From positions 2,229,738-2,293,737 of the forward strand of contig BFEA01000004.1 in NCBI GenBank assembly GCA_003427395.1: DNA of 64,000 bases, read 5' to 3'. The DNA is from Chara braunii (Eukaryota > Plantae > Charophyceae). The notes under the pieces are model-generated. The model did no database searches and was not told the DNA's origin. It saw only the letters and a program-made list of their open reading frames with translations. The position numbers and the translations under genes were made by a program. Shown here one piece after another: positions 155-61,001 of the stretch. Positions within the stretch are counted from its first letter, which is position 1. Every line of letters starts with the position of its first letter.

Positions 155-221
<67 letters not shown>

Positions 222-247
222 CTGCACTTCCGCACACGACTGTGCCA

Positions 248-300
248 GACTGTTTCGTTGTACTTTCACCGACTCATCAGGAGGTTCATCCCCGACAGTC
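248..300 (-). ncRNA. Type III hammerhead ribozyme motif, copy 1 (stem II damaged)
   Basis: Minus strand: GACUG-UC^GGGG-AUGAA-CCUC-CUGAUGA-GUCGG-UGAAAGU-ACAAC-GAAA-CAGUC. Full catalytic core with stems I and III intact; predicted cleavage between 294 and 293. Confidence 0.85.
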
Positions 301-1772
301 CACCCAGGATACCCCTGACAAAAGTGGTGTGTGGGTGTGTGGGTGTCTGGGGGGGAGTGTGTTGTAAGTTTCCCCACCACAGCCTCTATTCTACCCAGAC
401 AAGTAGATTCGAGTTGAGCCAGCCCAACAACTAAAGAATTCACCTCTTTCGTAAGCAACATGAATCATAATTGAACCATTTTGAATTGTGTTTAGTTGGG
501 GTTTCTTTGGGGCAACAGTTCTATTATGCCTCCCGCGTACAAGGCTGCCCACGTGTGTGTGTGTGCGCGCGCGCACACACACATGTGAGTCTGTGTGTGT
601 GAGCACGCGCACGTGTGTGTGTGAGAGTGTGCGTGTGTGTGTGTGTGAGAGAGAAAGCCACTGCAACCATTGTTTCAACGCAGCCGGCCAACGGCGAGTT
701 TGACGGCGAGCTCAAACAGCCATCGCCATGTGCAATGGGATCTGATGAGTCGGGCCGTGCTTCACTTGGAAGGACTTGTGAGGGCTTGTTGATGTTTTGA
801 GAATCCACCGGTCCCTGCCATGTGATCTGAAAAATCGCACAAACACAATCCCCCCCCCAAAAACCGGAATGGGCCGATACTGGGCCTCGACGCACCACTG
901 ACCAAGTGGTGCGTCGAGGCCCAGTATTGGCCCGGTTTCATTGTTCCCCCCCCCTCCCCTCTCCTTTTTCCCGCCTTTTGCGACAGCTCGTGGGCAGAGC
1001 ACCGGGGCCCATCACGGCTTCGTTTTTTTCTTACGCGGTGAGTCATGGCGCTGCCTGTAGCTTCTGTTTTTTCAGTCCCATTTTCAGGCAAGCCATCGAC
1101 AGAGGCCACAAAATTTGCTGCTGATCGGACTGCCCAACTCACAGATGGGCAGAATCCGGTCGGGGTAGGTCATGACGCAGTGTCACACCTGACTGCATTA
1201 CACCCGACCAGAAGAAACTTAAATAGAAGGTAGTAGATGGCAAAGTCCTGTAGGTAGTGGTGAGACTCACACCGGGCAATATCAGCCTGGTCCACAGATC
1301 CAATGAGTGCTGAATAAGATACAGGCTGTCAAAAACGCCAAGCAACACCTCTTTCGTGCAGCAATGACAAACAAGGGAAACAAAGAAAACAGGCAAGCTG
1401 CCACATCCACGGAACCTATGCTTGTTGTTGGTCGCTACCGACTGCACTGGTTTTCCATTTGTTTGCTGAACTCCGATCCCAATCAAATGGCCAAACGCAG
1501 GCGCAGGAAGAAGGGGCAACAACTAACCTAAAGTGGGACAGGATAAATAATTGAATCACAAGATTGGGACAAGATGGGCCCAGTGAAATTCTATCCACTG
1601 CATTGGCAGCTGGAAGGTTGAGAGACACATTACCATAAATAAGAAGCAGCAAAACCAAGAGCAAAATGGAAAATGATGTCCTATCCAGACACAAGGTTAG
1701 AATACCCTTGAACACCACACGCACTTACAGAAGGTCGTTAAAGTGGCAAAGGAAGTCCCAGCCAGTACTTAC

Positions 1773-1902
1773 CTTCTGGAAGTTTATCTGAGCCTGCTCA
1801 ACAGTCAGCATTGTCAACCTTCCGCGCTTCATCATGTTCTCTATCTTAGTACTCAGTCTCCACTGCCGACAAGTCTCCAATGCCAGATATGGGCAGATTG
1901 CG
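1773..1902 (-). CDS. GLU1: Fd-GOGAT exon 15
   Basis: (S)[17 protein letters not shown]...EQAQINFQK|gtaagt. Confidence 0.95.
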
Positions 1903-4900
1903 CTGTACAACGAGTGGGGACCACACAAGGATCATCAACCACACATCAGATCGAGCTTGGCTCACTGTTATTATCATTAAAGAACAACAAAAAGAGTGCA
2001 ACGCTCCCCACGATAAGTGGAACCACACTCTTCTGGTGTATACTTAACTGCCATATCTGGTATATACTTTATCTGGATTTAAAATCCACTAAGGAGTGAG
2101 GACCAGTTCAGTGTACCGAATACAAGGACACATCAGACGAAAGGTTCACTGACGAATGTGTGCTTCACTTTTTTGAAGCTTGCTTGTGGAATAAAAAGCG
2201 AGGGTGGAGAATAGCAAATGTAATATGTAATATGTATATAATTTATCTGGATTTAAAATCCACGGAGGAGTGAGGACCAGTTCAGTGAACCGAATTCAAG
2301 GACACGTCAAAAAGACAACAGGTTCACTGATGAACGCATGCTTCACTTTTATCAAGCTTGCTTGTGGAACAAAAGGCGAGGGGATGGAGAATAGCAAACA
2401 GAATAGGACCAGCAGTAAACCCATCCTTGTGGCTGAATGATCAGTGACGTTGATAAAAAGACTAGAAGCTTAAATCCTAACGAATAGAATAATGCTAAGC
2501 GCTGCCCCCCTCCAAAAAAAAGAACGTGAAAAAGTAGTGACAGGACATAGAAATAGGTGGGAGGATGCCTCTGTGGGTTAGCAAATGACATGGCCGTTCC
2601 TGTTCTCTTTGTTTCACAAGTTTCTCAAAACAAGAAAGAAACATGCTAGGAAGGCTAGGCTGCCTGAGGACAAGGAGGGAGGGAGAGGATAAGAGAAAAG
2701 AACAAGTGCCTCTCAGCTAAACTGATGTGATCGAACTGGAGGTAAACTTTCTCTCATAAAATATGCAAGCAACAGACAGATAGGAGGCCCAAAGACAAGC
2801 TCTGTTCACCAACCAAAGGATCAAGATTCAAGAGCGAACAGGCTCTCCTTGGAACATTGATAAACAAAGAATTACACAGATGATTGCTATAGGTGAGGAA
2901 AGAGGTGAAGCAGATCTGGTATAGGAAAGAAAAGAATGAAACAGTGCACAAACTTGAGGACAGAATAGAAGCTCGAGTGCCAGTGAACTGGAATAGTCTC
3001 CAAACCATCCCTAAATGACTTAAAGTGAGGAAGGGAGAAAACCCGGCATAGACTCCGACATCACTAACAGCAGAAAAGTTGCTATGCACAGAGGCTGTGA
3101 GCAACTCACTATCATGCCTGTTCATACTGATAATACCAATCTGTGTCGGGTTTAACTTTTCAACATAAATGGTGGACTAATCCCATCCATGTGGTAGATT
3201 TCGATGGGCAGGATTGCACATTTATCAAAGGATTTAAGGTAGGGAGAAGTCGGGGGAGGGGGAGGGTAGAGCACATCGCCTTCTCCTTTTCAAGACGGCA
3301 CTGATCAGGCCCAGGTAGGGGAAGGGGGAGAGTGGGGAAGCGGGGGAGGCAAGGGAAAGGGTTCATTAGGGAGGTTGCTGATTCCGAACCTTGCACCATA
3401 TCCGATCAAGCATGCAAAGTGATGTGTGCTGAAGCACTGTGCGGTGTCTGCTACAATGGAAGCACTCAAACGGACTCCCCGCTGGATCAGATGGTGGTGT
3501 ACAGCTCCAACAGCCAGAAGAACAGGTATTGCCGGCCTCGAAGCCTCCTGCAAGAAGAGGGGAAGATTTATCATGGGATCAAGACTTTACCAGAATAACA
3601 ACCTCCATTGCGGGCGGGGAGGATTGACTGTCTGTGTTTTGCACATATTGGAAGCACAACCCCATCCTCATCCTGCTATCTAGCACCCCCATCCTTAGAG
3701 AAAGCAAATTTACCCGCAGTTCCTCTCAGCGTTTAGAAAGGCTGCCTAATTTCACCTTCGACCCTGGAATTACCAACTCCTCAGAGCAATCTCAGGGTCT
3801 CCTGACAGTGACTAGGGGAAAGGCCCGGGTGGGCTATAATTTTTTCCTATTTGCTCTTGGAAGAGGGACCCTACTGACACTGAAAATAAAATCATGCAAT
3901 TAAAGCAGCAATTTGGTACAATAACATAACTAGATTGCCTGCCCGAATAACCTTTGACAGCCGAATGAATAACAACAACTTGCTTCAATCAAGATTGGAC
4001 TAGGGGCCTCGCTCCACTACTCTCCAAATGTGAAAAACCAGACTGAATCCTCCACCAGGACATGGAATGATACATTGCTATATTTTTTGTCGTTTGTGCA
4101 TGTGGAGCATAGTAGAGCGAGGCCCTATATTGTGGTTGTTTCAACACTTCTGTTGGTGTTGGTTCTGGCATTTGTGTGTAGGCTCCCAACTTCCCAAGTC
4201 TAATGAAGTGCAGACAGGCTAGGTAGTCAGCACCGAAGGATTAGAGGATTGCAGCATTTGATTAGCACGGCCCCACCAAAGCCATCTCATTTTATGCATT
4301 GCGTCAGGCCTTAGATATCACATTGTGGCCCATACCTGGCCATACCCATGTCTTTATCGTGCGACGTGCATGATGCCCAGGCACACTAACTGACACAGAA
4401 CATTTGGATTGCTAGGACTGCAAGACTGCAACCATATAAATCTTCCCACTATGCAAAAGAAGATAAGATTGTCATAGGTACATGGACTGGCTTGCAATAT
4501 ATTTTCAAGGAGTTAAATCCTGAGATCCCTTGACATATCGTCCAATAAGTGCAAGCTCTGATGGCATCATCACCACATGCGTGACGGTGATGAATATCTG
4601 CGAAAAATGAAAAGGTGATGGCTTTGCAAAAGATGGAAAATGCAAATCAAGACCCAATAGAAGTTCTTGCACTGTGTCAACACACCTGCCATATACAAAG
4701 ACAAGGACGCCACATATGCCACCTCATTAGGATGCAAAGTTGCAAACTTTATTGCCTGCAATAAGGGGCAGGCCTCACTAACAGACACTGCGCTCATGCT
4801 TGGAACCTGGCCGTGATAACAATGTCATACAGGTTTGTGCTTTCATCTGTGCTTTGATATGTGCTTTCATATGTGCTTTCAAAGCATGAACATGGCACCA

Positions 4901-6297
4901 AATGGGGCCTGGCCCCACCTGACAAAACCCATGGGCTAAGAAGGGAGCGCATGCTTTGATAAGAGGAAAGAGGAACTATGTCCTTCATTCCTCCCCCCCC
5001 CTTTGAATAGGGGTGTTGACGCCTTTTGCTAAGCCCTCATCGTTTTTGCCCCCGTTTTCCATTTGTCTGACAACATGTGCTGTGGCATATTCATTGGCAT
5101 GGTTTCGTTTCGCTCTATTGCTTTTAGTATCTCTTCCAAATGCTTTGCTCGTACACAATCTGGCCACGATTTCTTGTCCGTACTTTTAGCGACTGCCATG
5201 GAGACATACTGTGTAGTAATTTACGACATCATTATGGCTCACCAGCTGTGGTGTCTGATCGCTGAGCACAATGAGCTTTGATCCATTCCTAACGGCATTC
5301 TCTGCGTCTGCACAGAGCTGTTCCAGGGCCTTGCCCAAAGCACCCTCCAATCCTTGAGAGATGTCAAAGAAGATTGGCAATGTCGCAGGCTTCAGCTCAG
5401 GGTCCGCCTTAAGCTCCATCAAATCCTGCTCATTCAATATCGGGGATGGAAGCCGCACCTGCCAAGGGACACCAAATACAACAGAGGCACATACCTCAGC
5501 AAAAGAAAAACAGAGCACTTCACCAGTCCCCTACAACATTTGATTAAGAAATCAGCAAGGAGAAGAGAAGTTGCAACCTGAAAAGTACTACATAGATCAA
5601 GCACTTGCTTGATCCAAGGTAAAAATGAAAAGAGAGGAAGGAAAGCACACACTGAAGTTGAATGAGCAATCAACTGAAAAGAGAGGGAGAAGCCACAAAT
5701 CCGAATGCATGATATAGATAAAACGGAGAGCGAAGAAAAATGCAAATCTGAATAAGCATTTCTTGAGCATTCGTCCTCTCATATGGGCCCTTCCCTTCTT
5801 CCTCGTCCCCACGCTCCTCTCCTACCCTTCCCATGACCATCTCTAAATGCAGTCAGCCTCTGGTGCCCATCAACTCTTTGCTACCTCTCAGAGGAGAGGG
5901 GGGGGGGGGGGTTAGACTTGGGGTTGCTGACCCCACAGTCGTCAATTCATCTTCACCGGGAATCAAATGGTTGCCGGCATTCCTGCAGCAGAGTGTACTT
6001 TTGCGTTGTCATGTTCGCTATACACACCTTCGCGAAAAAATGAAAGACTGTGCCAAACTGTTTCGTCGGACTTTCACCAACTCATCAGGAGGTTGAACCC
6101 TGACAGTCTTCCCAGGATGCATTTGACTGATGAATAAGGACTCACAATTGCCCAGAGTTAGAGATACCCCTGAGCAAAGCGGTTGACTTTACTCACACCA
6201 ACCCTACTAGCAGTCTGTTGGTCCAAGCACCTGACAAGAAATGGCAGTAAGTCTGCAAAACTAGTCTATCATTATTAGCATCATATGCATGTGTCTG

Positions 6298-6347
<50 letters not shown>

Positions 6348-9300
6348 GAATGATGGGATGCTTTGAGGAGCTTCTTGTTGTTCATTCAGCATATATATTC
6401 AATCTCTTCGCTTGCGAGCAAATGTCTGACTTCAGTGTCTGCAGTGTTACTAGTTGAATTTTGAGTTGTGAGAACTTGTGACCAAGTTCATTGCAATTTC
6501 TGCGGCAACCCCAACTGGCATCCCATGCCTACCTGTCTTGCATTCTCCGGTCCAAGGTTCAAAATGTTGCCTCGCTCGCCGAGGTTCATTTCCAATGACA
6601 TTACCAACCCTTCTCTCAGGGGATCAATGGGGGGATTCGTCACCTGCCACACAGTTAATGAGCAAAATCATTATACAATAATCCATCAGTGCTCGTGAGA
6701 ATGCCTAGAAACAAGAGGTGACTAAGAAGACGAGCACGATGGCAGTGTGTAGCCCTGTCGAGTGAAAGTGTAAGGGGGAAGAAAGGGAGTCGGGGTGAGA
6801 GGGGATCAGGACAGAACTTTGCGTAAATCACCAAGGACAATCGCATTTTACTGCTCCATGAGACACCGACCGATTTACAATGAGATGCATGCAAGGATTA
6901 AATGATTTTGAAATTTAAATCACATTGATGATAAAGCAGACAAAAATTCACAAAACAACATACACACGTACTCTGCTCTCAGAAAGAGGGAAAGATGGAA
7001 GGACGGGAAGTTGGGAACTGAAAAAGAAAGACATACACCCAATAGCATTGCCCATAGCAGCTGACAAGTTTCTGGCCAAGACAGTAGCTAACAGAACCAA
7101 GAACGTTCCAGACAAGGGCTTTCATAACAATTTTTACAAGGGGTTTATATGAGGGAGATATCTACTCGGTAATAACAAGCCCACACAAAGTTTGCAAGCC
7201 GATACTCCTCAGTGGATGAGGGAGAAGGGATAACCACAAGCTCAGCCGAAGCAGCAAGATGCAAGTGCGGCCAAGGAAAAACAGATGATGCCATGCACAT
7301 TGCTCCTTTGACTGTGACGACGTAGAATGCTCTCACATAAATCAGAAAGACATGAGACAGACTACCAGAAAACCCTGTTGCTTTCTAAAAAGGACCAGGT
7401 ATTCTGAACACTCCCACAATACCTTAAAAAGAAAAAAGAAACGAAACTCAGTAGAAGACTGTCTCTTGGCGCTTGACCATATATATAAAATAATGCCAAA
7501 AAGACAATTCAAGATGCATAATGGAAACAGAGATGCCGACGGAGGGCAACGGCACAGTTGGCAATGGAACAAACTCCAAACAATACAGAGAAAGCACAGG
7601 AAATAAGGCACGCTAGGAAACCAAGCGGATAGCAAACAGCGAGGTGGTGACCTACCATTCATTGCAAAATATGGTTCAAGGATTGGTGTAGATCAGGAGC
7701 TTCGGGAGACCAATCACAGAGGAAGTTGCAAATATGAAGACGAAAGTGACAGCACTGACACGGCAATGGAGCACTGGCAGGGACGGACGAGCTTGCTGGA
7801 TCCTTGGTATGGTGGGAGCAATGCTCGGAGTTGTTTCCAAAAGAAAGGAAACAAACAGTGCATCCTTCCACTAAATGAAATCCTCCCAGAAAAGAAGCCT
7901 AGCTGATGCTCCTCAGTACAGAATGGAGCCGAGTCCGTATGGGGAAAAAGCTTGCAGGCTACCTGGAGTATATTTTTTCTGGCCCCATTGAAGTCCCTCT
8001 CATGACATGCTTGTGGATGAACCCTTAGTGAAAAGGGGAGAAAGTTCAAACGCAAAAGATGGGGGCGAGGGCATAGATGGGGAGGGCGTATCAAGCACCA
8101 GCTTTGCTTGACTGGCAACAATCTCCAGCCATGGCAGTTCTTGCAAGGCACAGAGGCTTGCGTCAAGGCACAGTAAATGTCACAGAAGAGAGAGGCAAAA
8201 TGCTCACCTGGGCAAAGCGCTGTTTGAAGTAATCAAATAGCAAATGTGGGCGTTGCGACAGTGCTGCAAGGGGGATATCGTCACCCATACAGAACGTCGG
8301 TTCCTTGCCTTGTGCAGCCATGTTCTCTATCACGAGTTGTACATCTTCACTTGAGTATCCAAATGCACTGTTGTGTTGTTGAATCACCATGATAACGAGG
8401 CCGCACCATCAAAGTGCATACCATGGGTAGCATCAGTCAAGATCACATCACAAATATGGACAAACAAAGAGCAGCCGTCAGAAAACGTTTTTTGAGGACA
8501 CGAGTGTCATCCATCTACTCCCCTCTGTTGAATAAAGACAAGCGCAGGTAACAGCATGCTGGACTAGATCATCCTCATGTGTGAGACTGTCCGCACAAGA
8601 ACATGGAATCGGTAGTCGCAAGGCTGTATGGCATAGAATACGCGAACAAGAGGAGGTGGAGAAACAGGGAGGATAATTGCATACCAAGCACCCAATATTC
8701 ACTACCACCATCACCAAAGGTAAGGGGAGAAGAACCATCACAGCAACCACCAGTCACCACAAGCAGCCAATCTTCACCACCACCATCATGAAAGGCGAGG
8801 TGAGCACACAACCATTACAGCAACCATCACCACATGGAATGATTACGTACAGAGGCTTATATTTATCACCATCATGAGACGTCACCATACCCATAACCAC
8901 CACAATCACATCCAACCCTGCCATCATCACCCATCACCACCATCACCACCATCATCATCATCCTCCCATCCAATCCCACTCCGACCACCATCACCACTAC
9001 CATCATCTACAACGTTCTTGTCATCATCATCATCATCATCATAACCATTTAGAATTCCCAAAGCAGACAGCATACAGAGCAGCTCAACCCACACCCACGC
9101 ACAAAATTGTTGCTGCTCCACAGATTTTTTGCTACACATTTGCTTTATGAGCAATGGGTTGCAGATATGAGGCATAGCAATGATGCTGAAAACTCAACAG
9201 TGCTACATTAGAGCTGATATGAATTGGCCTCCGTTAAGAGGATGAAACAAGGGGAGAGGAAGAGAGAGACAGGGTGAGGGATGCCGAGTATTGGAACGGT

Positions 9301-10223: not shown

Positions 10224-13200
10224 GCACTTTCAGACTGCATATGAAGGGAGAGGGGAGAGAGTTTGAATGGTTTTCAATATCTCATGCTCCTCTGAAGTAT
10301 TTCGATAACAGTATCATGTTTGCTGTATCGACTGCATCAACCAGGTACCCAAGTTGTAGATGCCAAGCAGATCCTCAACTGTGGTAAGAGTCATAATACA
10401 GGTGGTCTTCACATCACTTGACAGTTTATCGATAACCAACACTACAAGTAGACTATGACAGTGACGTGAGACTGATTGCCACCGATATTTTTTCCTTGAA
10501 AGATTTGAAAGAACATAAAGACAGACTGCGACTGCAAAGTGTAGTATTTGTTCCCCAACTCTTATCTGATCCGTGGTTCATTAGGCCAAATCAAAAAGAG
10601 AAAAGAGAGAGACAAATGGATCATAACATAAGATTCATAAGAATCGCAACACAATGCTCACCCTGCTAACATGAGTTCCAGACTCGCTTCGTCAAAGAAA
10701 ATAGAAGCATGCATGTCATACCCCACTGGCATGACTACAACATGCAGTGCGCATGTGTGTACAGTGGGAACGTCTTCCGTCTTTACTCCATGTTCTTCCT
10801 GCATTTTATTCATGTCTTCGCCCCCTTTCCTCTGTCTTCAAAAAAATCTAGACAGTCAAGACTCTAAAGTCTTTGCTTGCACTTTAAAGTCTAGACTCTA
10901 GACTTTAAACAGAAGCACACACGTTTGAGAGGAACCAAAATAATCACAAATTCACAAGGGGGATTCCCAGACAGCAACGACAGATGCTTGCAAGATGACA
11001 CAGTTCTATATCGGCAGGCTGAACGTCTTGTCATTCATCACCTCTTCAGGCTAGGCTAGTGGTAAATTAACGGTGATGGCAACATTTATTTTGTAACTGA
11101 CAGACCGCCTCATGGAAAGATCCTCAGTAAGTAATGGGATGAGGACAAAACACCCGTGAAAACAACAAATAAACTTCAATAAAGTAGCGCCAACAAAATC
11201 ACAAGAACAACTGGAGCGTACCTCTCCAGTCTCCACGTTGGCAATGACCATCATTCCTGGGCCGAGCCTCCCTTTGGACAAGATGGTGGAGTCATCAATA
11301 TTGAGCACACCAACCTGTAGAAACAACAAGCATGGACATTGGATAAGTGTGTTTATAACGTGTTCACAGATGACCAACTGAATCATCCTTCAGCACATAC
11401 CACTGCTGTGTTCTAAGATTGAGAGTTGTGCTTCTGTTAGAATGACTAGGCACTGGACAATAGGCGATATGTAACAAATATACCATGCCATTGGCCTTCG
11501 AAAATATGTTTTCAATAGCCCTGTCTTCAAAACAATGAGACACGACACAGAGTGACAAACACACTACGGTAGTTGATAATAGGCATCTCCTATACTGTGC
11601 AGGTGTAATCCTTCTCACGAGGATTGAAATTCATAGAATTGAACTTCCCAAGTGGTACGAACGTTCATTATGAATCGCTCCTTTGCCTATATAAATGAAG
11701 TCTACATTGTAGATAAAGTAACCCCCTCGGTTCCGTAAACAACTGTCATTGCAGTCAGTCTTCTCGCAGTCGGTCTCCTTGCGTACCATGAAATGCTCAT
11801 CTTGACGCCGAAGTTGACGGTTAAATTGTGTTAACGCATCCGCATACCTGGCATACCTACAGGACCCAGTCTGCAAAGGTCCATAGAGGATCTGAAGCAA
11901 TGTACAGTTTTCATTCCCCTTGCTCATAAAACAGCAAAAGCGCCGCCTGCTCATTTCCAGGCACTCCAATTTCATTACCTCTGATGCTACATACAGCATG
12001 TCGTCAGATGTTCTCCAGAAACGAGCGGGTCGAAGTCCATTACGATCAAGACAGGCCCCCACAGTTTTTCCATTGCTGCAAAATATAAGGCAAATCACAG
12101 AGCCATAGCAAGCCAATCAGTATCACAGGCGTATCGATCAACTATAAGAAAGCACTTTCCAACACAGATGAAGGAAAGAGCATACACTTAGGGGTCCTTC
12201 GGCCAGACGGAAGGATGCGTGTGTGAGTCCCAATGATGTATTAATTCTTGACTTGCCGGTGGAATAGGAACCGGACTGACGCTCCCCAGAATAGAATGGA
12301 GCCGGGACCATAAGGCCCCGTTTATAAATTAAAAAAAAAGGAAAGAGCATACAGCATGAGGCATGCTGAACCTGTTTTTCTTTCTTCTCTGGAGTTCCCT
12401 TTGTTACCTTTTTTTTTCAGCATATGGGCCTTTGGACCATTTCTCAATTTGTGAGTTTAACTATGCCAGGGGGCATGCCACTCTTCTTTGTATTGCAACA
12501 ATTATGACGGATTAAAAAGCACATTTCTTCCGTCCGTCTTTCACGGTTTCTCTTCCCATTGCTTAGCTCTCCCTTTTCACTGTGGCTCTCCGGTGCAAGG
12601 CTCAGCACGTTGGTGTATTTCGTACACTGGTCAGCAGTTTGCAGGTGATGTTTCAAGTGTTGAATACCCCCTGGGCTGTGTCCTGTGCAGTGATCTCCAC
12701 CCTACAGGGCCATCATCATGTAAGCAAAGCGATGCTCCAAGTGTTGAATACCCCCAGAGCTGCATCCTGAGCAGGGACTGAACCCAGCACAGCAGGTGGC
12801 CTGAGCCTTCACCGCCTGGGAGGATGAATCACATTCTTGCAACTCGCCAGCACGAGGACAGCAATTTGGGCATTGTCATCTGGAGGAAGGCAACAGCAAG
12901 AAGGTGCAGGAGAAGCACAGAGAGAACCGGGCAAGATAGAAAAACAGGCTGCTGATCTCCGGATGAGTGATGAAGCAGTGCATGCCATTGGCAATAAAGA
13001 GTTTGTTGATTGGCATCACAAACTCGAGACGAGCATGGTGGCAGCAATGGGGATGGGATAGTAGAAACAAAAGATTCTGTACCCAAACGAGACTGTGGAG
13101 GAGGCAAGAGGGTTTCTAGTTTATCTGTAGACAAACAGGAAAAAACGCAAGAAGGGTCAATGCACGGGTTAGAGAGAGCACGAGGATGGTAGGAACAAGA

Positions 13201-16200: not shown

Positions 16201-17477
16201 CCATTACTCACTACATGCACAAAAGATGAAAATTGTGGCGGTGCATTTTCCCATGTTCTAGCGGGAGATTCATTCTCATTTTGCGCATTTGGTGAGTAGT
16301 GGAGAGAGGCCCCATGTATGAACATCACATTCATCCCTTATGCATGGAGAAATGGTCTAGAAAAAATTGAACTAACAATGTGATAAGCCGAATGCGAGAA
16401 AACAACAAATAAAATGACAATGCGCCTGACGACGACAAAACGACAGCGCGCCCAACCAAAGCGATGCGGGCTTGCTATCCAATGGCTCGCGTTGCGAGAT
16501 ATTCGACATCATCAGCGCTCCTAGCGCACCACCTGGACAGCTGCCGTCCCCGCGCTCACCCTCGAAAGGCTCGCCATCTACGTGCTTACCCTCCGGCGAA
16601 CACCATCTTTCTTATTATGTATGGTGTGCGTTAATTGAAATCGAATAGAAATGGGGGCATAGTTTCTTTAAATAAACAGGCCTCTGGAGGACTACAGCAA
16701 TAGATCGCTGTAGTCTGCTTGCTCTGGCCACAGACCTTTCTCTCAGGCATAATTTAATTGATTTCCAAAGGGTATGAAGTCGGTAGATGCCGAAGCAACC
16801 AATGGCTGTTTAGTTAGTCTCACCCGAGTGACCGCCCACGGATTCGTACTGCTCAAGTATGCGATGTGCTTTTTAAGTCCATCAATTTAGGCTCCTTCCC
16901 ATCTGCTGACTGTGTACACAACCAGACCAGTGCTGCGCTGCGCGCCTATTCCTAGGCCGCCGATCGACCCGATCACACCGCTGCAACACATTTTCGCACC
17001 CCACCCCCGCCGCGGAGCGTGCCATGGACCTCCCCCAAAGCGGTCCACTGGTTTGGCTTCATACAGCCACACGTTTCTTTTCTATATCCCGCAGTTGGAC
17101 AAAAGTCTCAGGTGGTGGTCGTTTAAATCAGCTCAATCATGACCAACACAGACACACGTACACCTGTCTGCCAGGTGTATACTTTCTTGAGCCCCCATGT
17201 ACGATGGACATTCCAGGAGTCACCCTTCTTCTCAGCAGGGGACAAATTACAAACAATTTCTTACATCAAATGAGCAAAATATCAAAACTAGGCCATTGCC
17301 GCAGGCATAAAAAAGCATGTGGGAAACGACCGCTGCTTGCGAAGGGTTTTGCTACTGACTACAGCAAAAGAACAAACTAGAAGCACTGATGGCAGCTTAT
17401 GTTGCCATTTACCGCAGAGCACATCGTGCAAACAGAAGTCCAGACAACAATATCAATTCCGACCGAGACACACACAG

Positions 17478-17558
<81 letters not shown>

Positions 17559-23500: not shown

Positions 23501-26500
23501 CCAACTTAAGCTTATCAACACAACGGATGACTGACAACCTGTGAAGTACTGCAGGAATGATAGGGCGCCATGCAAGGTTTCCTACATCCTTTTTTTTTTT
23601 TCTTTCCCTGGCCCCATATGCCCTGAATCACCTACCACAGGCTACCAATATTTTGTCAGCAGTCATGCTCCAACAGATGAGCCACACTCGAGGACAGCAC
23701 AAAAGAAAGATCATCGGGGAAAAGAAAGGAAAACGAAAAAAAGAAGAAAAGAAAGGAGAATCAATCCGTCAAGGCTGCATCAGTGAGTTTGGTGCGAGGG
23801 TCTACTGCCACCTCTTCATCCAAGTCATTTACTTGTTGGGCCCTAAGTTTGGTCAGTTTTGGCACCAAGTGATATTTTTTGGCTTACCCGACTTTGGTAC
23901 CAAGCCACAATGCTTGCTCAACTGTGGCACAAAGCCCGATGAACCCACTTCCCCATAGCAGGCTGTTTGGTCAGAGTTCCCAACTACTTTCACGAACTTT
24001 ACAGCATGTTGCTTCACTTTTCTCTGAAGTCCTAAAACCTGGCAATTCGCTGTGCCGAGCAATTGGTTCATCAACTCTCTCTTTCTCTCTCTCTCGCGCG
24101 CGTGCGCGCGCCTTAACGTTGTTCTGTCTTCTCCTCACCCTCACACATCCAGGTCAACTCTTAGAAAAAAGCCACATGCACCAAATGGAACCACAACTTG
24201 GATGAATGGGTTCTCGAGGCACTACTTGATGCAATCTACACACCTGTCGAATGGTCGGCAGTGTGGCCTTGGCAAAAATACCGCAAACAGATTCTGTCAC
24301 TGGGACCTCTCTCCACCCTAGAAGCTCAATACCCTCTGCTTCCAGAACTCTTTTCACCACTGCAATAGACACACCACGCATTGTTGTGGACATATAAGAA
24401 GCACAGCAGCTGACCCGCAATCAGGACACACAATACATAACAAGAAGCGAGAGTGTGCAAGAGAAGCAGACGTTCGACTCTCACGCACACAAACTCAACA
24501 CAAGACTCAAAGCATCTGAGAGTGACAAGCACAGAGGAAAAATAACAACAGACTAAATACTAAACTCAGCACACGAAGAATCCAGCAGCGCAGTGAATTG
24601 CCTTCAAACTGAGAACAGAATGAATAAGCAACAAGCCCTGGCGCAGGAGCAGCTTCCACAACTTTCCGGTTACAATCTCGTTCACTTCCTGCCGTCTGGC
24701 CTCTGCATGAACTCCCCCAAGTTCCGCGTAGACACCCCCTTCAAGACGTCACATCCTTCAGACATGCACTGTTTTGGGGGTTGGCCTGCTTTCGCTCGAG
24801 GGCTACAATTGACAAACTCCTCTGGCTGGCTGGGAAATGCGACCACGACTATCGGCTGCTGGCTTGTTTTCTACTCTATGGCGATCTGCCTCTCTCAGAT
24901 GGTTGGCCTCTCTGTTGCATACTTTTCCTTCGCTCTCTAACAAAGCCGGGTGCTGAGTACGGGCTTTGCTATTTCGTTTGAACTTCTTTCGGGATAGGCA
25001 GAGATTTTATGGTCGCCTCCTGATTAAGCAGAGCACGCTACACCTAGTTTCAATATCAACTGTCTAGGTTCGGCTATATGGCTGTTTGTTGGGTCATATT
25101 CTCCTACAGCCTGGACAGTTGTCCCCCGGGGGTCCCCCAGGGCATGCTTTTCAGCAGGACGTCGCACATTCGCATATATTTGGTGCCTTGTTCGTTTTCA
25201 CAAGGATGATCCTGGTCAGTTAATCCCCGGGTCTCCGGGCGATCAACGCTGCCAGGACAAAATGAGATGTTGGTGTTGTCAATTCTCATGCTACGCTTGC
25301 AGTGGTTGTATGTGGGATGCTGTGCAGGTGGCACATTTCTTATTTAAAAAATAAATTAAAAAAGGAAGAAGAATGAATCAATAGTTCGGACCTGGACGCT
25401 CTCGCCCTAAAAGAGCTAAAAAAGAAAGCAACAGCCTATCTGTCCGTCGCAGACCCCTCCAAACAGAGATTCATCACCAAGGTAGCCTGGAAACACGTGA
25501 CCCATAAAAAGCACCAGGGAATTCTTGGAATTTTGGACCCATCGACGCAGGCCCTCCAGACAAAATGGGTTTCGAAACGAATCCTGACCTAGGCAAACTT
25601 TGGGTCATGGGATGGGCCCCATCGACCCAGACAAAGGACCCATCGACCTAGGCAAACTTTTGGCCATGGGATGGGACCACAACCCCGTGTCTGAAGCACC
25701 CTCCACTGCATCAACTGGTGACCTCTGGGAGTCCCAGCAGTGACCACAAACAAAGAGCAGCAGAGATCCCAGCAAAATCCCCTACCCCATGGCTCCAGGA
25801 GGGATCTGGGTTCCCTCCAACGCCCAGTGCTAGTCTGTCCTAGATGAAGCACGGGGCCAGGGACCCAGGATAGAGCCGAAGGCACAGTGAAGCACCACGA
25901 ATGCCTGGCTTACGGAAGATAGCGCTACCGCATCTAACGAGGTCACGCTGCACTCTAGCAGTGGTAATAGAGAGTACTCGTCCACTGGCATCCATTCTAG
26001 ATGAGAGGAATAGGGGGGTGATAGAATTCATGTAGAAGGTGGTGACAGCATGGTTCCCGCCGGAGTATTATCTGGGCGAGAGAGTGGAATCATCCATTTG
26101 ATCTATTGATTTACTATGATTATGATCTGCACTCGAGTTCTTTTTTATTCAATTATTTAACAGAGGAACAAAGCTGATTTTTGCAGTTGTTATGCTTTGT
26201 TGAGCCTTTTTCATCATTCTCTCCTTTCATTAATCTCTTCTCTCTGCATCAATGTGATGCTGGCTCCTCTTGAGAATTTGCTGGGAGAGAGAATCAATGC
26301 ATTCTTGCATTCTATTGATCGTAATGATTTCGTAAAGCTCCCACATTAGCTTTTTCTCAACCTCTGAATGATGATGATGATGAAATCAGATGAATGAATG
26401 AGAGGCGGAGGAGCTGCTGCTATGCTCTGTACCGCTTTCTTCTGATCTCTCTTTTAATGTCCTTTTGTTCTGCCTCAAGGTGATGCTACGCCAACTTCCG

Positions 26501-29500
26501 AATGTTGTCGACTTACGTTACAAATATGCTTTCGTGCAAGCATGCTTTCGAATGTTATAAATATGCTCACATTCAAAACACTGACGAATAATGTAAATAG
26601 TGTGTCTTTCCCCATTGAATTAAAGATCTAGCATCATAACTGATCCTCCGCCTTCACTGCCAAGAGTCGCTTGCTGTTATGCTCATATCGCTAACTGTGT
26701 TTTCACTTCACTTACTCTCATGATGATATCGCTCACTCGACCTCACTTTGACTGATTTGACTGATTCCTTTCTTTTTGTTGTTTTTGCTCTGTGATCTTC
26801 CTTTCTTTTTTCTTTTTTTTTTTTTCCTCTGTGGTTTCACTCGCTGTCATGTTGATATCAATCACTGTAATTTCACTTCATGCCAACGCACGCCATCAAG
26901 AGAACAAAGTTCTTTTGAAGTCACAAATCACTAGCAACCCGGAGCAAGAAGGCAACATAATTATAAATTGTAGTCTCATGCAAGCAGAATCACTGGATGA
27001 GGTGCAGAACAGTGAACTGACCCTCCTGCGCTGCAGCTGCCTTCTCCAGATCTCTTGGTAGAAACACCATCCCCACTCCGGTGTTGTTTTCATCCAAGGG
27101 ATCAAGGCCCTTCTCCTTCGCCCACTCATTGAACAGTGCCCAAGGAATGCGAGTCATCACCCCAGCGCCATCTCCTGACCTGTTATCCGCACTGCACGCC
27201 CCTCGATGCTCCATACATCCAAGTGCAATCAATGCCTGCTCTACAATCTTATGGCTTGCCTTGTTCTTCAGATTGGCTATCACTCCGACACCACATGCAT
27301 CCCTCTCCTTCAAGAGATCCTCCATGTCCACCACCTGTGCACCACACCAGCATGCAAGAAACCCAAAACATAAACCACCACATGTAGCGCATGCGCCACA
27401 CTTAACCGAGGAATCGGATTTTTCCAACAAGAAAGAAAAAAAGAAGTGCATGCGCACCACTAACCGAGGAAATGGATTTTCCCAACAGCCGAGGAAACAG
27501 GTTGAACAGAATTCTGAGTACTGTGGCGCAGAGTGAGAAGGAAAATGAGAAAGGATGAACTCAAAGCAGCAGAGCACAAACAGATCTTGGAGAATAACTT
27601 CCTGGCAGGGGATAAGATTGCAGCAATCAAGGGACACAGCCTAGTATTGGCAATATGGGAGGAGGGCACAAATGCTCCACAAAGTTCGGCGCAAACAGAA
27701 ACACATTCGCTCAACACGAATCGTTCGGCATCCACATGGAATCCTCGTAAAAAAGAGCAATGGACCGATCGACCACACCGCTAGGACACAGGTAGTACAC
27801 TAAACAAAACACAGCACAGTAATTAGGCAAGACCTAGGAGCATAGACAGGTTGTGGAAATAGCTCGGGCAGGGTAAAAAGTCTTAGCAAAGTCACCAGAA
27901 CGCAGCATTCCAGACCAGTTCAAGCTTCGCCAACCACATGATATTGATAAGACCTAGACAAAGGACCACCAGGATTAGGGTTTAGCCCATCCAGCAGCAA
28001 GTAGCCAGGCTAGCACGTCCGGCGCTTCATGTAGATCCGACAGCCAAACAGCTGAGAGGAACAAGTTAGACCAAGCCCGGATAAGACGGCTACAACAGCA
28101 AGCGGACAGAGAGGTACAATGACTGGCAATCACAGATCCAAAGTAAGTCTTGTTAGCATAACTTAGGCAGGGGTGAGGGGTGGTACATCCTTCCCAAAGG
28201 GAAGTAATCAATGTCGTCCACTCGGGCCTCTTAATCTTAATGGAGAGGAGTGTGTGTGAGCTACCTCTTGTAACAGCTTCTGACTTACCGGTGGAATAGG
28301 AGCTGGCCTGCTGCTCCCCAGAATGGAAAGGAGCCAGAACCTTAAGGTTCTGCGCATGGACTACCAAATCCGAAGCGGATCTCAACCAAAAAAACAAAAG
28401 AAAGCATAGGTGGGGAACAGCCCACAACAATCGGATTCAGTGGTGCCCACAGCTCCCCCCTCCTCCCCCATATCCAGCCTATCATCGAGTGGGAACCGTG
28501 GTTTAGATCTCTGTGGATCAGCAGCTGCCACGTTTCCGTTTATTTAAACCACCAGTACCTTTCCCCGCTTGAAAATAGAAGTCGCGCCTGAAAGCAACCC
28601 TGTGGAGACAATTCCCCGAGCTCGTCTATTATTTGCAAATCACCAGTCCAACCAAGCCTATCGTGTCCAACGTCGGTTTACACCAACCCTGGCTGGACAT
28701 CCCACACTTTATTCACGACGGTTACCGGACTCCTACCGTTGTTGGGGTCCGAGGGTCGGGGGCTGACGTCATTTTCCAACGCAGTGACCTCACCCGGCAC
28801 TGCCCACAACCTCCATTTGCCTAGATGGCAGTGGATAAGGCCCCACTATGGGCTGGTGGTATAAACCACCACTACCTCTGAGCCTCTTTTTGCCAAGGCG
28901 GAAGAGAACCGTGTGCCAAACCCCCATATGCCTGGATGCCAGTTTAAGGCTTTAAGCCACCGCTACCTCTTTTTGCCAAGGCGGAAGAGAACCGTGTGCC
29001 AAACCCCCATTTTGCCACGGCCAAAAAGAAATGCGTACCAAGCTTTGCCGAAGCACCACTGTGATCTTTCTCTTTCCTTTCAGCTGGCACGGCAAGACAT
29101 TGTGATCCAGCAACACTGCTGCAACACTGTTCACCAGAAGAACCCAGAATGTTACAATTCTGATTCTCGACATTGCCTGGGAAAGGTAGTGGTGGTTTAA
29201 GCCTTGGGGCAATTCCAAAAATACAGCCCCAGTTGATTTCCCACTTGTGTCCAACTGTACCCAGATACACAGATGCCATTAATAACAATTAATATAGGTT
29301 ATGAACCTTGATGTTTCCCATTGTCCCGATACATGTTGACAGGCAACTATCCAAATATTCAACCTTCTCGGGGATATCTATCTTGCCATTCCCCCCTGCA
29401 TTATATCATTCAGCTACACCATAGGCAGGGACAGCCCCTTAACTTCTTAGGGTACCCACTCGAATTTGTTTACCAAGGTCACAAGGGCATTTGTGAAATT

Positions 29501-50891: not shown

Positions 50892-52299
50892 CCGCACCGA
50901 ACGAGTTACCGTTTACTGTTCGGATCTTAAATCTTGACTCCTCCCACTTGAGGTGAGGCGGCGTTAGTGGCCACGAGTAATTGCACTCCCTACACGAAGA
51001 CAGTTTAAGGCCCGCTGTGACTGCTAGTTTCTCATCTAGCCATGCAGTCGAACTTCCTTCAGCCATGCAGTGTGTATGGGGGTTAAGTCGGTAACAAGCC
51101 AGGAGGAGAGAGGGACCGCAGTTCAGACGGAAGACGGGAGAGAGAAACACTACCAGGAGCTCCGCTTGAAGCGCCAAAAATTGAGAGTCAAGACTATAGA
51201 AACAGCACTAAAAAAATTGACGAAAAAAATTGACGAAACGTAGATTCTTCGTGTTCGTGTGTACGCGCGCGTGAAAATCTATGTGTGTGTGCGTATATTT
51301 CTGTGCACGTGTTTGTACGTGCCTACATGTGTGTGTGCGTGTGTGCGTGTCTTGTGCCAGACTGTTTCGGCGGACTTTCATGGACTCGTCAGAAGGTTGA
51401 TGTGTGTGTTCTTGTGTGCTCGAGTGTACGTTCGATTAATTACGTGTGCAAGTTAGCGAGGAGAGAGAGAGAGAGAGAAAGAGGGAAAGGCAGTGGTGAC
51501 AGGTGAGTGAGGCGCCCAGTGTTAAACGTACAAGTCATCACCCGTTCTAAAGGTGGGAGTTTCAACTGCACGATAATTTAATGTAGACACAGACGAAAGA
51601 GAAGGCACGGATGAAGGTGTGGCGAGAGCATGATCGACAGAGATGAGCAGGGGAAGGCGGGAGAGGAGCCGTTCAAGTGGGGGTAGATGGGGCGTTCTAG
51701 TGGGGGTAGATTTTCGGGATGGGGACCTGAGGGTGGATTCACACCTCAACGCCCATTTCCTTGGTTTTGCCGGCAGCCTTTCCATGACCATTTTGTGCAA
51801 ACGATGAAGCTCGAATGACTGATCGCCTCGTGGCAGCGAGGAAAGGCCACCATTTGCGCTCCCCATGAGTCTGCCACCTGAGTTGTTGATTTCTCTTTCC
51901 CACTCCCTCATTCACCGACGACGCCCTCCTCCTCAATCCATCAAAGGCGGCGAAATGTTCTGCCCAAGAACCACTGACACCCCGCCGACGGTGAAGCCGG
52001 TCTGTAAGCGGACAACAGCTCCGAGCGGACGCGACGAAGCCCGAGCTGCTGCCACGTGGCAACGAGAGAGAGGCCGATCCAGCAGCAGCAGCAGCGTAAT
52101 TACCAACAACCGGTGCGACGCCAAGAATGGTCGATTGTTTGCCCGAGGACTGCGCAGCTGGTCTAGAAGAGCGCCGCGACGAGGAGGCAGAGGAGGAAGT
52201 CGATGACGACGGGGACGACGAGGCGGAGGAGGGAGGAGAAATATGTGCTCGATACCCGAGAGAAGAGAGCAGCTGATTCGAAGTCACAACATGCGCCAT
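1773..52299 (-). CDS. GLU1: Ferredoxin-dependent glutamate synthase (Fd-GOGAT), plastid-targeted; exons 1-15, 3' part outside the window
   Basis: The spliced translation (907 aa) contains ERDA|CGVG (Ntn-amidotransferase Cys1), [91 protein letters not shown] and [28 protein letters not shown], typical of plant Fd-GOGAT. All 14 introns are GT-AG with matching phases. The symbol denotes a GLU1/GLU2-like homolog. Confidence 0.96.
2068..2400. repeat. ~175-bp tandem duplication
   Basis: TTATCTGGATTTAAAATCCAC...GGAGAATAGCAAA occurs twice. Confidence 0.85.
3390..3547 (-). CDS. GLU1: Fd-GOGAT exon 14
   Basis: [22 protein letters not shown]...[10 protein letters not shown](S). Confidence 0.95.
4004..4125. 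mobile_element. 122-bp MITE, PIF/Harbinger (Tourist)-like
   Basis: TIR GGGCCTCGCTC(C/T)ACTA; flanks TAG/TAT. Confidence 0.8.
5243..5458 (-). CDS. GLU1: Fd-GOGAT exon 13
   Basis: [10 protein letters not shown]...[18 protein letters not shown]; 216 nt. Confidence 0.94.
6055..6109 (-). ncRNA. Type III hammerhead ribozyme motif, copy 2
   Basis: Minus strand: AGACUG-UC^AGGG-UUCAA-CCUC-CUGAUGA-GUUGG-UGAAAGU-CCGAC-GAAA-CAGUUU. Core and stems II and III intact; A.C mismatch at the base of stem I; predicted cleavage between 6102 and 6101. Confidence 0.85.
6533..6643 (-). CDS. GLU1: Fd-GOGAT exon 12
   Basis: Manual translation [37 protein letters not shown] (not in the ORF track); cag|GTG and CAG|gtaggc borders. 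Confidence 0.95.
8208..8367 (-). CDS. GLU1: Fd-GOGAT exon 11
   Basis: [30 protein letters not shown]...FKQRFAQ. Confidence 0.96.
9460..9602 (-). CDS. GLU1: Fd-GOGAT exon 10
   Basis: [20 protein letters not shown]...LLTRQ; ends in phase 2. Confidence 0.93.
11222..11314 (-). CDS. GLU1: Fd-GOGAT exon 9
   Basis: VGVLNID...KGRLGPGMM...TGE; 93 nt. Confidence 0.95.
11979..12075 (-). CDS. GLU1: Fd-GOGAT exon 8
   Basis: (S)[20 protein letters not shown]...YVASE. Confidence 0.95.
14004..14074 (-). CDS. GLU1: Fd-GOGAT exon 7
   Basis: [23 protein letters not shown](S); ends in phase 2. Confidence 0.95.
15315..15413 (-). CDS. GLU1: Fd-GOGAT exon 6
   Basis: [21 protein letters not shown]...YPE; 99 nt. 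Confidence 0.95.
16191..16312. mobile_element. 122-bp MITE, same family
   Basis: GGGCCTC TIRs; perfect 3-bp TSD CAT. Confidence 0.85.
17579..17710 (-). CDS. GLU1: Fd-GOGAT exon 5
   Basis: [10 protein letters not shown]...[11 protein letters not shown]; 132 nt. Confidence 0.95.
18680..20640 (-). mobile_element. Degenerate retroelement remnant, possibly the C-terminal part of a LINE ORF2
   Basis: Purine-rich minus strand with frameshifted Trp/Cys-rich fragments (e.g. FACPWITEL) and an internal ~120-bp tandem duplication (19870-20100); family not secure. Confidence 0.35.
21047..21209 (-). mobile_element. tRNA-derived SINE (family A) with 8-bp TSD
   Basis: A box TAGCTCAGTTGG, B-like GCTCGAATCC, body CTGAATTACCTGGGGCCGGTCAG, T/A tail; TSD CTCTTGCT at 21039-21046 and 21210-21217. 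A partial duplicate lies at ~21372-21494. Confidence 0.8.
22295..22621 (-). CDS. GLU1: Fd-GOGAT exon 4
   Basis: VFVK...IVYKGML...HNGEINTLQ; 327 nt. Confidence 0.96.
22991..23170. repeat. ~89-bp tandem duplication ending in G-rich (GGGGTGA)n
   Basis: ACTTAGACACCCCAAACTCTAGGTCAACTCTC... occurs twice. Confidence 0.85.
24244..24359 (-). CDS. GLU1: Fd-GOGAT exon 3
   Basis: [21 protein letters not shown]...TLPTIRQ; AG/GT borders, phase 1 to 0. Confidence 0.95.
25389..26060 (+). mobile_element. L1-clade LINE ORF2 remnant
   Basis: 25389-25591 translates [11 protein letters not shown]...[30 protein letters not shown], matching the post-RT L1 motif VAW..v..pK..GGLGi.D.....AL..KW. The downstream extent is approximate. 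Confidence 0.7.
27022..27334 (-). CDS. GLU1: Fd-GOGAT exon 2
   Basis: cag|GTGGTGGAC...GAG G|gtcagt; [17 protein letters not shown]...AAAAQE; 313 nt. Confidence 0.95.
28548..29196. mobile_element. Stack of ~3 TTAA-family TIR elements
   Basis: TTAA-ACCACCAG...CTGGTGGT-ATAA-ACCACCACTACC...TTAA-GCCACCGCTACC...GGTAGTGGTGGT-TTAA. Confidence 0.7.
31200..31410. repeat. ~42-bp minisatellite
   Basis: Repeated CAGGGTGCTCAATTTCGCCCGTGCCCCTATGCTACCAACC. Confidence 0.88.
33377..33498. mobile_element. 122-bp MITE, same family
   Basis: GGGCCTTGCTCCACTA TIRs; flanks AAT/TAT. Confidence 0.82.
34033..34114 (+). tRNA. tRNA-Ser(GCT)
   Basis: 82-nt GTGGCTTTGGCCGAGTGGTTAAGGCGTGTGCCTGCTAAGTACATGGGTTATACCCGCGAGAGTTCGAATCTCTCAGGCCACG. 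Paired acceptor stem, A and B boxes, GCT anticodon, long variable arm, discriminator G; CAA immediately upstream and T4 about 30 nt downstream. Confidence 0.9.
34306..34347 (+). pseudogene. tRNA-Ser 3' half within a ~233-bp tandem duplication
   Basis: ACATGGGATATACCCACGAGAGTTCGAATCTCTCAGGCCACG followed by a copy of the downstream flank (34073-34305 duplicated at 34306-34538). Confidence 0.8.
34590..34837 (+). pseudogene. tRNA-Ser pseudogene interrupted in the D-loop by a TIR element
   Basis: TGGCGAGTGG-TCAA-[171-bp element]-TTAAGGCAGTGCCTGCTAAGTACACGGGTTATACCCGCGAGAGTTCGAATCTCTCA. Confidence 0.75.
34604..34774. mobile_element. Non-autonomous TIR element, TTAA-flanked family
   Basis: TIR ACCACCAGTACT/AGTACTGGTGGT; flanks TCAA/TTAA. 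Confidence 0.78.
35326..35416 (+). pseudogene. U6 snRNA pseudogene
   Basis: GGGACATCCATTAAAATTGGAATGATACAGAGAAGCTTAGCATGGCCCCTGCGCCCGGATGACACACATAAAT; several substitutions, no U-tract, no evident USE/TATA. Confidence 0.85.
36838..37053. mobile_element. TTAA-family TIR element (right end degenerate)
   Basis: TTAA-ACCACCAGTACTTG start; shares internal AATGGCTGG and TTTCCAGCATCGG with the 34604 copy. Confidence 0.62.
37092..37158 (+). pseudogene. U2 snRNA fragment, retroposed
   Basis: TGGCTAAGATCAAGTGTAGTATCTGTTCTGATCAGTTTAATATCTGAT (branch-point pairing GTAGTA, stem IIa), then a (TA)n/A-rich tail; flanked by AAAAAAGAAT at 37083-37092 and 37186-37195. Confidence 0.88.
39923..40195. repeat. 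~56-bp minisatellite
   Basis: Repeated CATTTCACCGATCAGGTTTCAGGTTTCCTACCCAGGTATTAGTTGGGCAT. Confidence 0.9.
40860..41125. repeat. Degenerate tandem repeat (CATTGTAGACTATGTACC core)
   Basis: Core motif recurs many times over ~260 bp. Confidence 0.8.
42356..43061. repeat. Long inverted repeat (two copies of a dispersed element, tail to tail)
   Basis: 42356-42507 mirrors 42911-43061 and 42650-42696 mirrors 42858-42903; partial copies at ~750-835 and ~40277-40325. Confidence 0.8.
43510..43700 (-). mobile_element. SINE family A copy with internal inversion
   Basis: A box TATCTCAGTTGG, B box GTTCGAATCC, same 3' end as the other copies. Confidence 0.7.
43704..43825. mobile_element. 122-bp MITE, same family
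   Basis: TIRs; perfect TSD AGG; abuts the 5' end of a SINE. Confidence 0.82.
46175..46480. repeat. (CTCTG/CTCTCTG)n simple repeat
   Basis: Explains the LCSL-rich spurious ORFs. Confidence 0.92.
47636..47730 (+). pseudogene. U6 snRNA retrocopy a
   Basis: TCCTTCGGGACATCTGTTAAAATTGGAACGATACAGAGA...GGCCCCTGCGCAAGGATGACACGCATAAATCGAGAAA; the AGATTAGC segment is replaced. Confidence 0.88.
47740..47839 (+). pseudogene. U6 snRNA retrocopy b (5'-truncated, with U-tract)
   Basis: GACATCCGTTAATATTGG...ACAGAGAAGGAAGATTAGCATGGCCCCTGCGC...GAGAAATGGTCCATTTTTTT. Confidence 0.88.
47911..48079 (+). mobile_element. SINE family A copy
   Basis: TTACCAACTGGCGTAGCTCAGTTG...GAAATACAGACCCGAGTTCC...CTGAATTACC...CCTTT-A9. 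Confidence 0.8.
48365..48617 (+). mobile_element. SINE family A copy (host of U6 retrocopy c)
   Basis: CAGACCCAAGTTTAAATCC...CTGAATTACCTGGGGTCGGTCAG...TCAAGGCC, interrupted by U6. Confidence 0.72.
48497..48572 (-). pseudogene. 3'-truncated U6 retrocopy c with 12-bp TSD, inserted in a SINE
   Basis: Minus strand GTCCTTCGGGACATCCG...GCAAGGATGACAC, flanked by AATGATAATATT at 48485-48496 and 48573-48584. Confidence 0.92.
51353..51401 (-). pseudogene. Truncated hammerhead motif, copy 3
   Basis: Minus strand AUCAA-CCUU-CUGACGA-GUCCA-UGAAAGU-CCGCC-GAAA-CAGUCUGGCAC. Lacks the 5' stem III strand and the GUC site; embedded in degenerate (TG)n. Confidence 0.7.
51745..52299 (-). CDS. GLU1: Fd-GOGAT exon 1 (185 aa, Ser/Ala/Arg-rich plastid transit peptide)
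   Basis: ATG at 52299 (MAHVVTS...), Ser/Arg-rich and acid-poor. Donor GAG|GTGTGA, phase 0, joins in frame to [14 protein letters not shown]. The link across 24 kb is inferred from composition and phase. Confidence 0.8.

Positions 52300-60903: not shown

Positions 60904-61001
<98 letters not shown>

Follow-up and report, generated by a model that had tools for sequence, protein, structure and literature searches.

We analysed a 64,000-nucleotide stretch of the genome of the charophyte alga Chara braunii (GenBank assembly GCA_003427395.1, contig BFEA01000004.1, positions 2,229,738 to 2,293,737 of the forward strand; hereafter the window, to which all coordinates refer), in which a short non-coding repeat carrying a type III hammerhead ribozyme motif occurs in three copies. 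All copies lie on the minus strand, and element orientation below means this strand. The initial annotation had placed the hammerhead at 238-330 and reported that the surrounding repeat recurred at 6046-6185 and, in part, at 51353; direct reading and Rfam confirmed the motif, and blastn and nhmmer recovered the recurrences. Copy 2 is matched at 6046-6118 (88% identity) and again at 6163-6183. A glutamate synthase (GOGAT) gene with very long introns extends over 5189-27640 on the same strand and runs off the start of the window. Copy 2 sits between its exons, and is thus intronic and in the sense orientation. Copy 1 is probably intronic as well, because further glutamate synthase exons must follow beyond the window, so that the intronic location proposed earlier holds for copy 2 and is likely for copy 1. 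The features of the locus are collected in Table 1.

Table 1. Copies of the hammerhead repeat, adjoining simple-sequence tracts and glutamate synthase exons in the window.
Feature	Position	Strand	Evidence and remarks
Copy 1 of the repeat	238..330	-	about 91 nt, ends in UGGCACAGUC; blastn against the window, nhmmer E 2.9e-25
Copy 1 hammerhead	247..301	-	RF00008, 40.7 bits, E 2.2e-5; 2 of 5 stem II positions are non-pairs
Copy 2, the longest copy	6046..6209	-	read and contig depth profile with loose ends, blastn
Copy 2 hammerhead	6055..6109	-	RF00008, 42.8 bits, E 5.6e-6; predicted cut between 6102 and 6101
Copy 2 segment without counterpart in copy 1	6119..6164	-	alignment, family loose-end consensus at 6145 and 6150
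Copy 3	51353..51401	-	blastn 84% identity, nhmmer E 8e-15; 5'-truncated within loop 1/stem I
Possible copy 4, very decayed	23959..24011	-	nhmmer E 0.044, weak; no intact core; near a (GA)n/(GC)n tract
TG/CA-rich tract directly 5' of copy 1 (element orientation)	326..351		Tandem Repeats Finder, sequence; richness 0.61; imperfect (CA)n on the element strand
(TG)11(GA)22 compound microsatellite	155..220		Tandem Repeats Finder; 17 nt past the 3' end of copy 1
Glutamate synthase exon, central domain	5189..5530	-	Pfam Glu_syn_central E 1.5e-11; downstream of copy 2
Glutamate synthase amidotransferase exons	26993-27640, 11634-12116, 11054-11389	-	Pfam GATase_2 E 6e-31

Read directly, positions 300-248 of copy 1 hold the complete layout of a type III hammerhead. 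Stem III pairs GACUGU (300-295) with ACAGUC, whose 3' strand has CAGUC at 252-248. C17 lies at 294, and the predicted cut falls after GUC, between 294 and 293. Stem I (GGGG/CCUC, 293-290 and 284-281) is closed by loop 1, AUGAA, and is followed by the core CUGAUGA (280-274), by stem II (GUCGG/ACAAC, 273-269 and 261-257) with loop 2 UGAAAGU (268-262), and by GAAA (256-253); beyond stem III, the tail UGGCACAGUC occupies 247-238. Both the sequences and the Rfam alignment show that copies 1 and 2 possess the CUGANGA...GAAA core, the A15.1-U16.1 pair and the GUC triplet, and in both the topology is that of type III, in which loops close stems I and II while stem III is open. The scores obtained over the whole window with the Rfam model RF00008 (Hammerhead_3) are below its gathering cut-off of 48.5 bits for both copies, which therefore escape automatic annotation. 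A chance origin of the motif is nevertheless rejected, because E values of about 1e-5 were obtained twice and the two copies have a 73-nt repeat in common; a 43-nt pattern, allowing up to 3 mismatches, had no match across 100 shuffles.

The lesions of copies 1 and 2 are complementary, as had been proposed from the sequence. In copy 1, stem I (4 bp) is intact and stem III measures 8 bp, and stem II contains C.A and G.A mismatches. In copy 2 it is stem II that is intact (GUUGG/CCGAC, 5 bp); stem III measures 7 bp, and an A.C at pair 1.1-2.1 leaves stem I with 3 bp plus the mismatch. Copy 3 has kept the core (CUGACGA, GAAA), its stem II is broken and its cleavage site is lost. Stem III differences among these three decayed copies are one-sided only (G-C/G-U and G-U/A-U). 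In folding calculations the hammerhead fold of copy 1 reached -8.6 kcal/mol as against a minimum free energy (MFE) of -14.0 kcal/mol for a different fold, and the MFE structure of copy 2, again more stable than its hammerhead fold, is register-shifted and pairs C17 together with part of the core. Judged from their sequences, the lesions of the window copies should weaken or abolish cleavage, and for copy 1, decayed and internally deleted, cleavage is predicted to be unlikely; copy 1 is a dead fragment without a likely function of its own. The presence of copies 1 and 2 on the sense strand of glutamate synthase could suggest that they act as functional ribozymes in the regulation of its pre-mRNA, but both copies are lesioned with respect to the family majority described below, they are two among roughly 1e4-1e5 dispersed copies, and at a likeness of at least 99% the copy 2 locus accounted for only 1 and 3 reads in two RNA runs. 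We regard a regulatory role as scarcely credible.

Copy 1 lacks an internal segment of about 46 nt that is found in copy 2, with the break located between two short similar motifs. This segment is present in most members of the family and carries UUCAUCAG, which is complementary to the core CUGAUGA(G). In the MFE folds both UUCAUCAG and an upstream UCAGGGG pair with CCUCCUGAUGA. Since the fold energies do not differ significantly from those of shuffled sequences (z -0.26 and -1.58), the enclosure of the ribozyme within a hairpin stands as an observation without statistical support.

To describe the family beyond the window, contigs from a DNA run and from a probable RNA run, together with raw reads from two oligo-dT RNA runs, all of the same organism, were aligned to 5850-6290 (441 letters) at a likeness of at least 80%. 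In the DNA run the contig depths add up to ~758,000 over 6060-6074 as compared with 4-9 in the unique flank; such sums are not copy numbers. The ratio of ~1e5 is consistent with 3 copies per 64 kb in the Chara braunii genome, whose size is ~2 Gb. Read depth thus implies a family of roughly 1e4-1e5 copies, in line with the abundant, dispersed mobile family that had been postulated from the window copies. Depth amounts to ~550,000-760,000 across the ribozyme body and tail, 70,000-160,000 over 6090-6134, ~23,000 over 6135-6149 and 1,000-7,000 up to 6209, past which it is ~100. It therefore drops in steps toward the 5' side in element orientation, and the repeated extent of copy 2 in family reads ends at ~6209 on that side, with a rarer 3' extension to ~6002. 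This profile fits massive 5' truncation, several sub-families that have only the ribozyme in common, or both.

The majority letters of the family, read position by position against copy 2, repair the ribozyme. At 6101 the majority changes A to G on the element strand, restoring G1.1-C2.1, and at 6079 it changes U to C, giving the stem II GUCGG/CCGAC that the initial annotation had reconstructed for a perfect consensus ribozyme. The family consensus is thus a type III hammerhead free of lesions, and its stem III is long. The majority letter at 6071 turns loop 2 into UGAAACU, and the majority also deviates from copy 2 at 6053, 6110 and 6133. The likeness to copy 2 is 90-95% for most contigs, near the value that the majority sequence itself would score. 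Reads frequently break at 6101, where the upstream side is conserved consensus and not random flanks; in the window, not one of the three copies begins exactly at the cut site. At 6071 and 6053 each of the three window copies has the minority letter, and the copies diverge from one another by 12-16%, which gives them the look of old members of a minor sub-family. Exact-pattern scans of a metagenome collection with the family core gave 0 matches and then 1 (L001), which we rejected as fortuitous, the sequence being AT-rich and devoid of an Rfam hammerhead; the corresponding scan of a viral collection gave 0 matches.

The flanks of the copies are rich in simple sequence, and the earlier statement that copies 1 and 3 adjoin microsatellites was borne out. 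In element orientation the tail of copy 1 is followed by 17 nt and then by (CT)22(CA)11, and its 5' side abuts the TG/CA-rich tract of Table 1; copy 3 is flanked on both sides by CA-rich tracts. Since CA/TG-rich 24-mers make up just 0.38% of the window, the abutment of two of the three copies on CA-like tracts is unlikely to be due to chance (roughly 1e-3). The loose ends of family members truncated at 6092 show that (TA)n precedes them. Compound (TG)n(GA)n microsatellites recur elsewhere in the window as well (155-220, 6291-6345, 17470-17556 and 60890-60990), and copies 1 and 2 each lie within ~100 nt of one of them.

A type III hammerhead in a streptophyte host brings to mind the plant-type retrozymes, in which the ribozyme resides in long terminal repeats (LTRs) of 300-400 bp and mobilisation by Ty3/gypsy elements proceeds via circular RNA; a solo LTR of such an element would also carry the motif. 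Loop 2 (UGAAAGU) and the layout indeed match the Rfam type III consensus well. The repeat, however, measures just 90-208 nt, and around all three copies we found microsatellites and no LTR-like direct repeat. There was no second hammerhead repeat within 2.5 kb, the nearest hammerhead copies being 5.8 kb and 45 kb apart, and a tRNA-Met 12-mer resembling a primer-binding site (PBS) had no match in the window with at most 1 mismatch. Reading of the sequence revealed no 4-bp target duplications at any of the three copies, whose flanks are microsatellites, and the depth profile shows 5' truncation. An LTR retrozyme, whole or solo, is accordingly a highly improbable identity for the repeat. A scan for bacterial-type promoters and terminators near copy 2 was empty, and is uninformative for a eukaryote.

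The family is transcribed, as ~0.03% of the sampled polyA RNA reads carry it. After GGCACAG, 1005 of 2196 aligned reads in one polyA RNA run and 2172 of 5197 in another continue into one and the same C/T-rich 3' flank (loose ends at 6048; 91-92% agreement). Because 40-45% of the aligned polyA reads have this single flank, one family member outside the window, at one locus or at a few identical loci, dominates polyA expression of the family. Such a locus might represent either a source copy of the element or the 3' untranslated region of a host gene.

We interpret the three copies as dead insertions of one abundant non-coding retroelement family that carries a type III hammerhead near the 3' end of its RNA and behaves as would either the non-coding 3' portion of a Chlamys-type Penelope-like element (PLE) or a non-autonomous element derived from one, and we give this interpretation a probability of about 70%. 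Each copy bears the lesion of a dead insertion, namely an internal deletion in copy 1, a point mutation in copy 2 and a 5' truncation in copy 3. The (CA)n-like tracts beside copies 1 and 3, the (TA)n ahead of members truncated at 6092, the truncation of copy 3 in stem I, the stepwise loss of depth on the 5' side, the head-to-tail joints seen within single DNA contigs and the lack of a poly(A) tail, LTR or PBS favour the link to PLEs: in Chara braunii, Chlamys-type PLEs reach very high copy numbers, are often 5'-truncated and target (CA)n or (C)n (Craig et al. 2021, PMC8557442). Canonical hammerheads are known from two groups of C. braunii elements, Chlamys-2_cBra ('canonical 3'-HHR') and the PLE-X-type families, and Chlamydomonas has non-autonomous Chlamys elements whose 3' ends are common to autonomous ones (PMC8557442). 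For animal non-LTR retrozymes, too, a derivation from PLEs as non-autonomous elements has been argued (Li et al. 2026, bioRxiv 10.64898/2026.07.22.740005). The link is circumstantial, the likeness to the published Chara PLEs being judged by described features and not by sequence identity. Hammerhead PLEs are already published for Chara braunii (PMC8557442), and the initial suggestion that such a family might be undescribed in charophytes does not hold. As for the double affinity that the initial annotation had suggested, the plant retrozyme part was not supported, no LTRs or PBS having been found around the copies and no circle joints in the reads examined, and the PLE-like part fits better.

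The motif, the family size, the truncation profile, the microsatellite flanks and the transcription are observed, and a mechanism drawn from knowledge of PLEs and retrozymes could connect them as follows. A PLE reverse transcriptase (RT)/GIY-YIG nuclease would nick microsatellite DNA, and the element RNA would be copied from its 3' end by target-primed reverse transcription. Copying would often stop early, so that even tiny copies would retain the ribozyme. Where a source copy is intact, its ribozyme would cleave after GUC and so cut multimeric or read-through transcripts down to unit length, while the upstream UCAGGGG and UUCAUCAG may refold the RNA by pairing with the core and thereby turn the ribozyme off.

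Several observations weigh against the derivation from PLEs. The hammerhead is of type III, whereas PLE hammerheads are usually of type I. No matches to RT, GIY-YIG, gag-like or zf-CCHC domains were found in any of the 113 open frames of at least 98 aa in the window, where the search for such frames returned glutamate synthase exons alone; the linked RT/GIY-YIG frame for which a search had initially been suggested is thus missing there, and LTR pairs, likewise suggested, were not found around the copies. Copies 1 and 2 have the same 5' start, suggesting a defined short element and not random truncation. RNA ends did not accumulate at the cut site 6102/6101 in the two oligo-dT RNA runs, and no position at all in the aligned stretch qualified as a common start or end of RNA molecules; nor was any back-joint of the kind expected at a circle joint supported in the raw reads, although oligo-dT libraries catch small circles poorly and circles could be missed. 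Finally, the 3' boundary is heterogeneous. The window copies end in GGCACA(GTC), and many family members run past GGCACAGTC with ATGC, a T-run and more conserved sequence, a diverged version of which extends to ~6002 in copy 2.

This last feature would suit a short interspersed nuclear element (SINE)-like origin, that is, an RNA polymerase III transcript mobilised by a long interspersed nuclear element, with the T-run as its terminator. Downstream of the ribozyme, many members have GGCACAGTC-ATGC-T(9-18), as seen in the loose ends at 6046 and 6057, and the unit is short and non-coding, as it would be in such an element. In one subfamily, however, the sequence runs on beyond the T-run, none of the three copies has a poly(A) or A-rich tail at its 3' end, Rfam detected no tRNA-, 5S- or 7SL-like head, and the microsatellite flanks suit PLEs better; we consider a SINE-like origin very unlikely.

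The common 5' start of copies 1 and 2 bears instead on an independent type III non-LTR retrozyme, a unit of ~100-210 nt that would be transcribed in tandem, cut itself, circularise and be copied in trans by the RT of a PLE or of another element. The repeated extent stops near 6205-6209 with diverse flanks, self-complementary segments surround the ribozyme, the family is represented in polyA RNA as stated above, and head-to-tail joints join units of 61-219 nt within single DNA contigs, all of which speak for this reading. On the other hand, the back-joints and skips that were listed are single contigs, mostly from the DNA run, and point to occasional head-to-tail genomic copies; the RNA runs give neither supported back-joints in the raw reads nor an accumulation of ends at the cut site, with the reservation already made on small circles; the window copies are all single units, with no tandems; and the fold energies lack significance against shuffles. 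We thus hold independence to be unlikely. The form of it that combines both kinds of element, a self-standing streptophyte-algal type III non-LTR retrozyme of ~100-210 nt, self-cutting and perhaps circular, which Chlamys PLE enzymes would paste into microsatellites at ~1e5 copies, we regard as rather unlikely.

Other repeats and small RNA genes in the window were recorded alongside the hammerhead family. Full-length U6 small nuclear RNA (snRNA) sequences above the Rfam cut-off lie at 35325-35427 (+), 47730-47839 (+) and 48462-48572 (-), partial or weak ones at 31081-31150, 12426-12528, 42175-42263 and 45712-45796, and a U2 at 37091-37262; the U6/U2 group, within ~36 kb, may be an snRNA gene cluster or consist of retroposed U6 copies. 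A tRNA-Ser(GCU) at 34033-34114 (+) is followed by a 233-nt tandem duplication (34073-34538) that repeats its 3' half, and a third tRNA-like copy stands 700 nt on, at 34770-34838, as might result from a tRNA-derived SINE or from local duplication. Two near-perfect hairpins start with GGGCC, one at 871-933 (29-nt arms, 5-nt spacer) and one at 52862-52983 (34-nt arms, 54-nt spacer), the latter within a 125-nt repeat that is present three times (4003-4127 and 52861-53110); they possibly represent a foldback family resembling miniature inverted-repeat transposable elements. A 77-nt tandem repeat at 39921-40194 has 3-4 copies with 88-95% identity.

Among known systems, the Chlamys-2_cBra and PLE-X-type PLEs are the closest to the family, with which they share the host, a hammerhead at the 3' end or in terminal repeats, the copy number, 5' truncation, insertion at (CA)n and partial tandems. 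They differ in being coding elements, whereas no coding part is linked to the window copies, and the main text of the report describing them (PMC8557442) neither states a hammerhead type nor describes short non-coding Chara derivatives. The departures from the textbook picture of PLEs are the type III topology and the extreme number of very short copies. The MRC1-type non-autonomous Chlamys elements of Chlamydomonas reinhardtii are likewise non-coding and occur with pseudo-LTRs or as head-to-tail copies, but no hammerhead has been reported in them (PMC8557442). Metazoan non-LTR retrozymes and the hammerheads of PLE pseudo-LTRs resemble the family in their short non-coding units and are thought to be non-autonomous partners of PLEs (PMC7229834; 10.64898/2026.07.22.740005). 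Their ribozymes are of type I and they form tandem arrays of 150-400 nt units, whereas the Chara family is of type III and occurs mostly as dispersed single fragments (Cervera and de la Pena 2020, PMC7229834). Plant LTR retrozymes consist of 300-400 bp LTRs with hammerheads and 300-600 bp of non-coding sequence between them, with a PBS, a polypurine tract and 4-bp duplications, and give circles of 600-1000 nt (Cervera, Urbina and de la Pena 2016, PMC4918200). Like the Chara family they are type III, non-coding and non-autonomous and have self-complementary sequence around the ribozyme, but the family unit is ~100-210 nt and not 600-1000, it is microsatellite-flanked and 5'-truncated, neither LTRs, a PBS/PPT nor 4-bp duplications were found, and no circles were seen in the RNA reads.

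Recognition of the family accounts for a large class of short repeats that lie beside microsatellites and within introns, which is of value for annotation. In the current grouping, plant LTR retrozymes are of type III and animal non-LTR retrozymes and PLEs of type I. A PLE-style, microsatellite-targeted type III element in a streptophyte alga, if that is what the family is, would bridge both groups and offer a concrete system in which to test the origin of plant retrozymes from PLE hammerheads. A published proposal derives plant LTR retrozymes, and via them viroid-like RNAs with hammerheads, from the hammerheads of PLEs (PMC5680766), and for that descent a self-standing Chara retrozyme, if real, would be a missing link.

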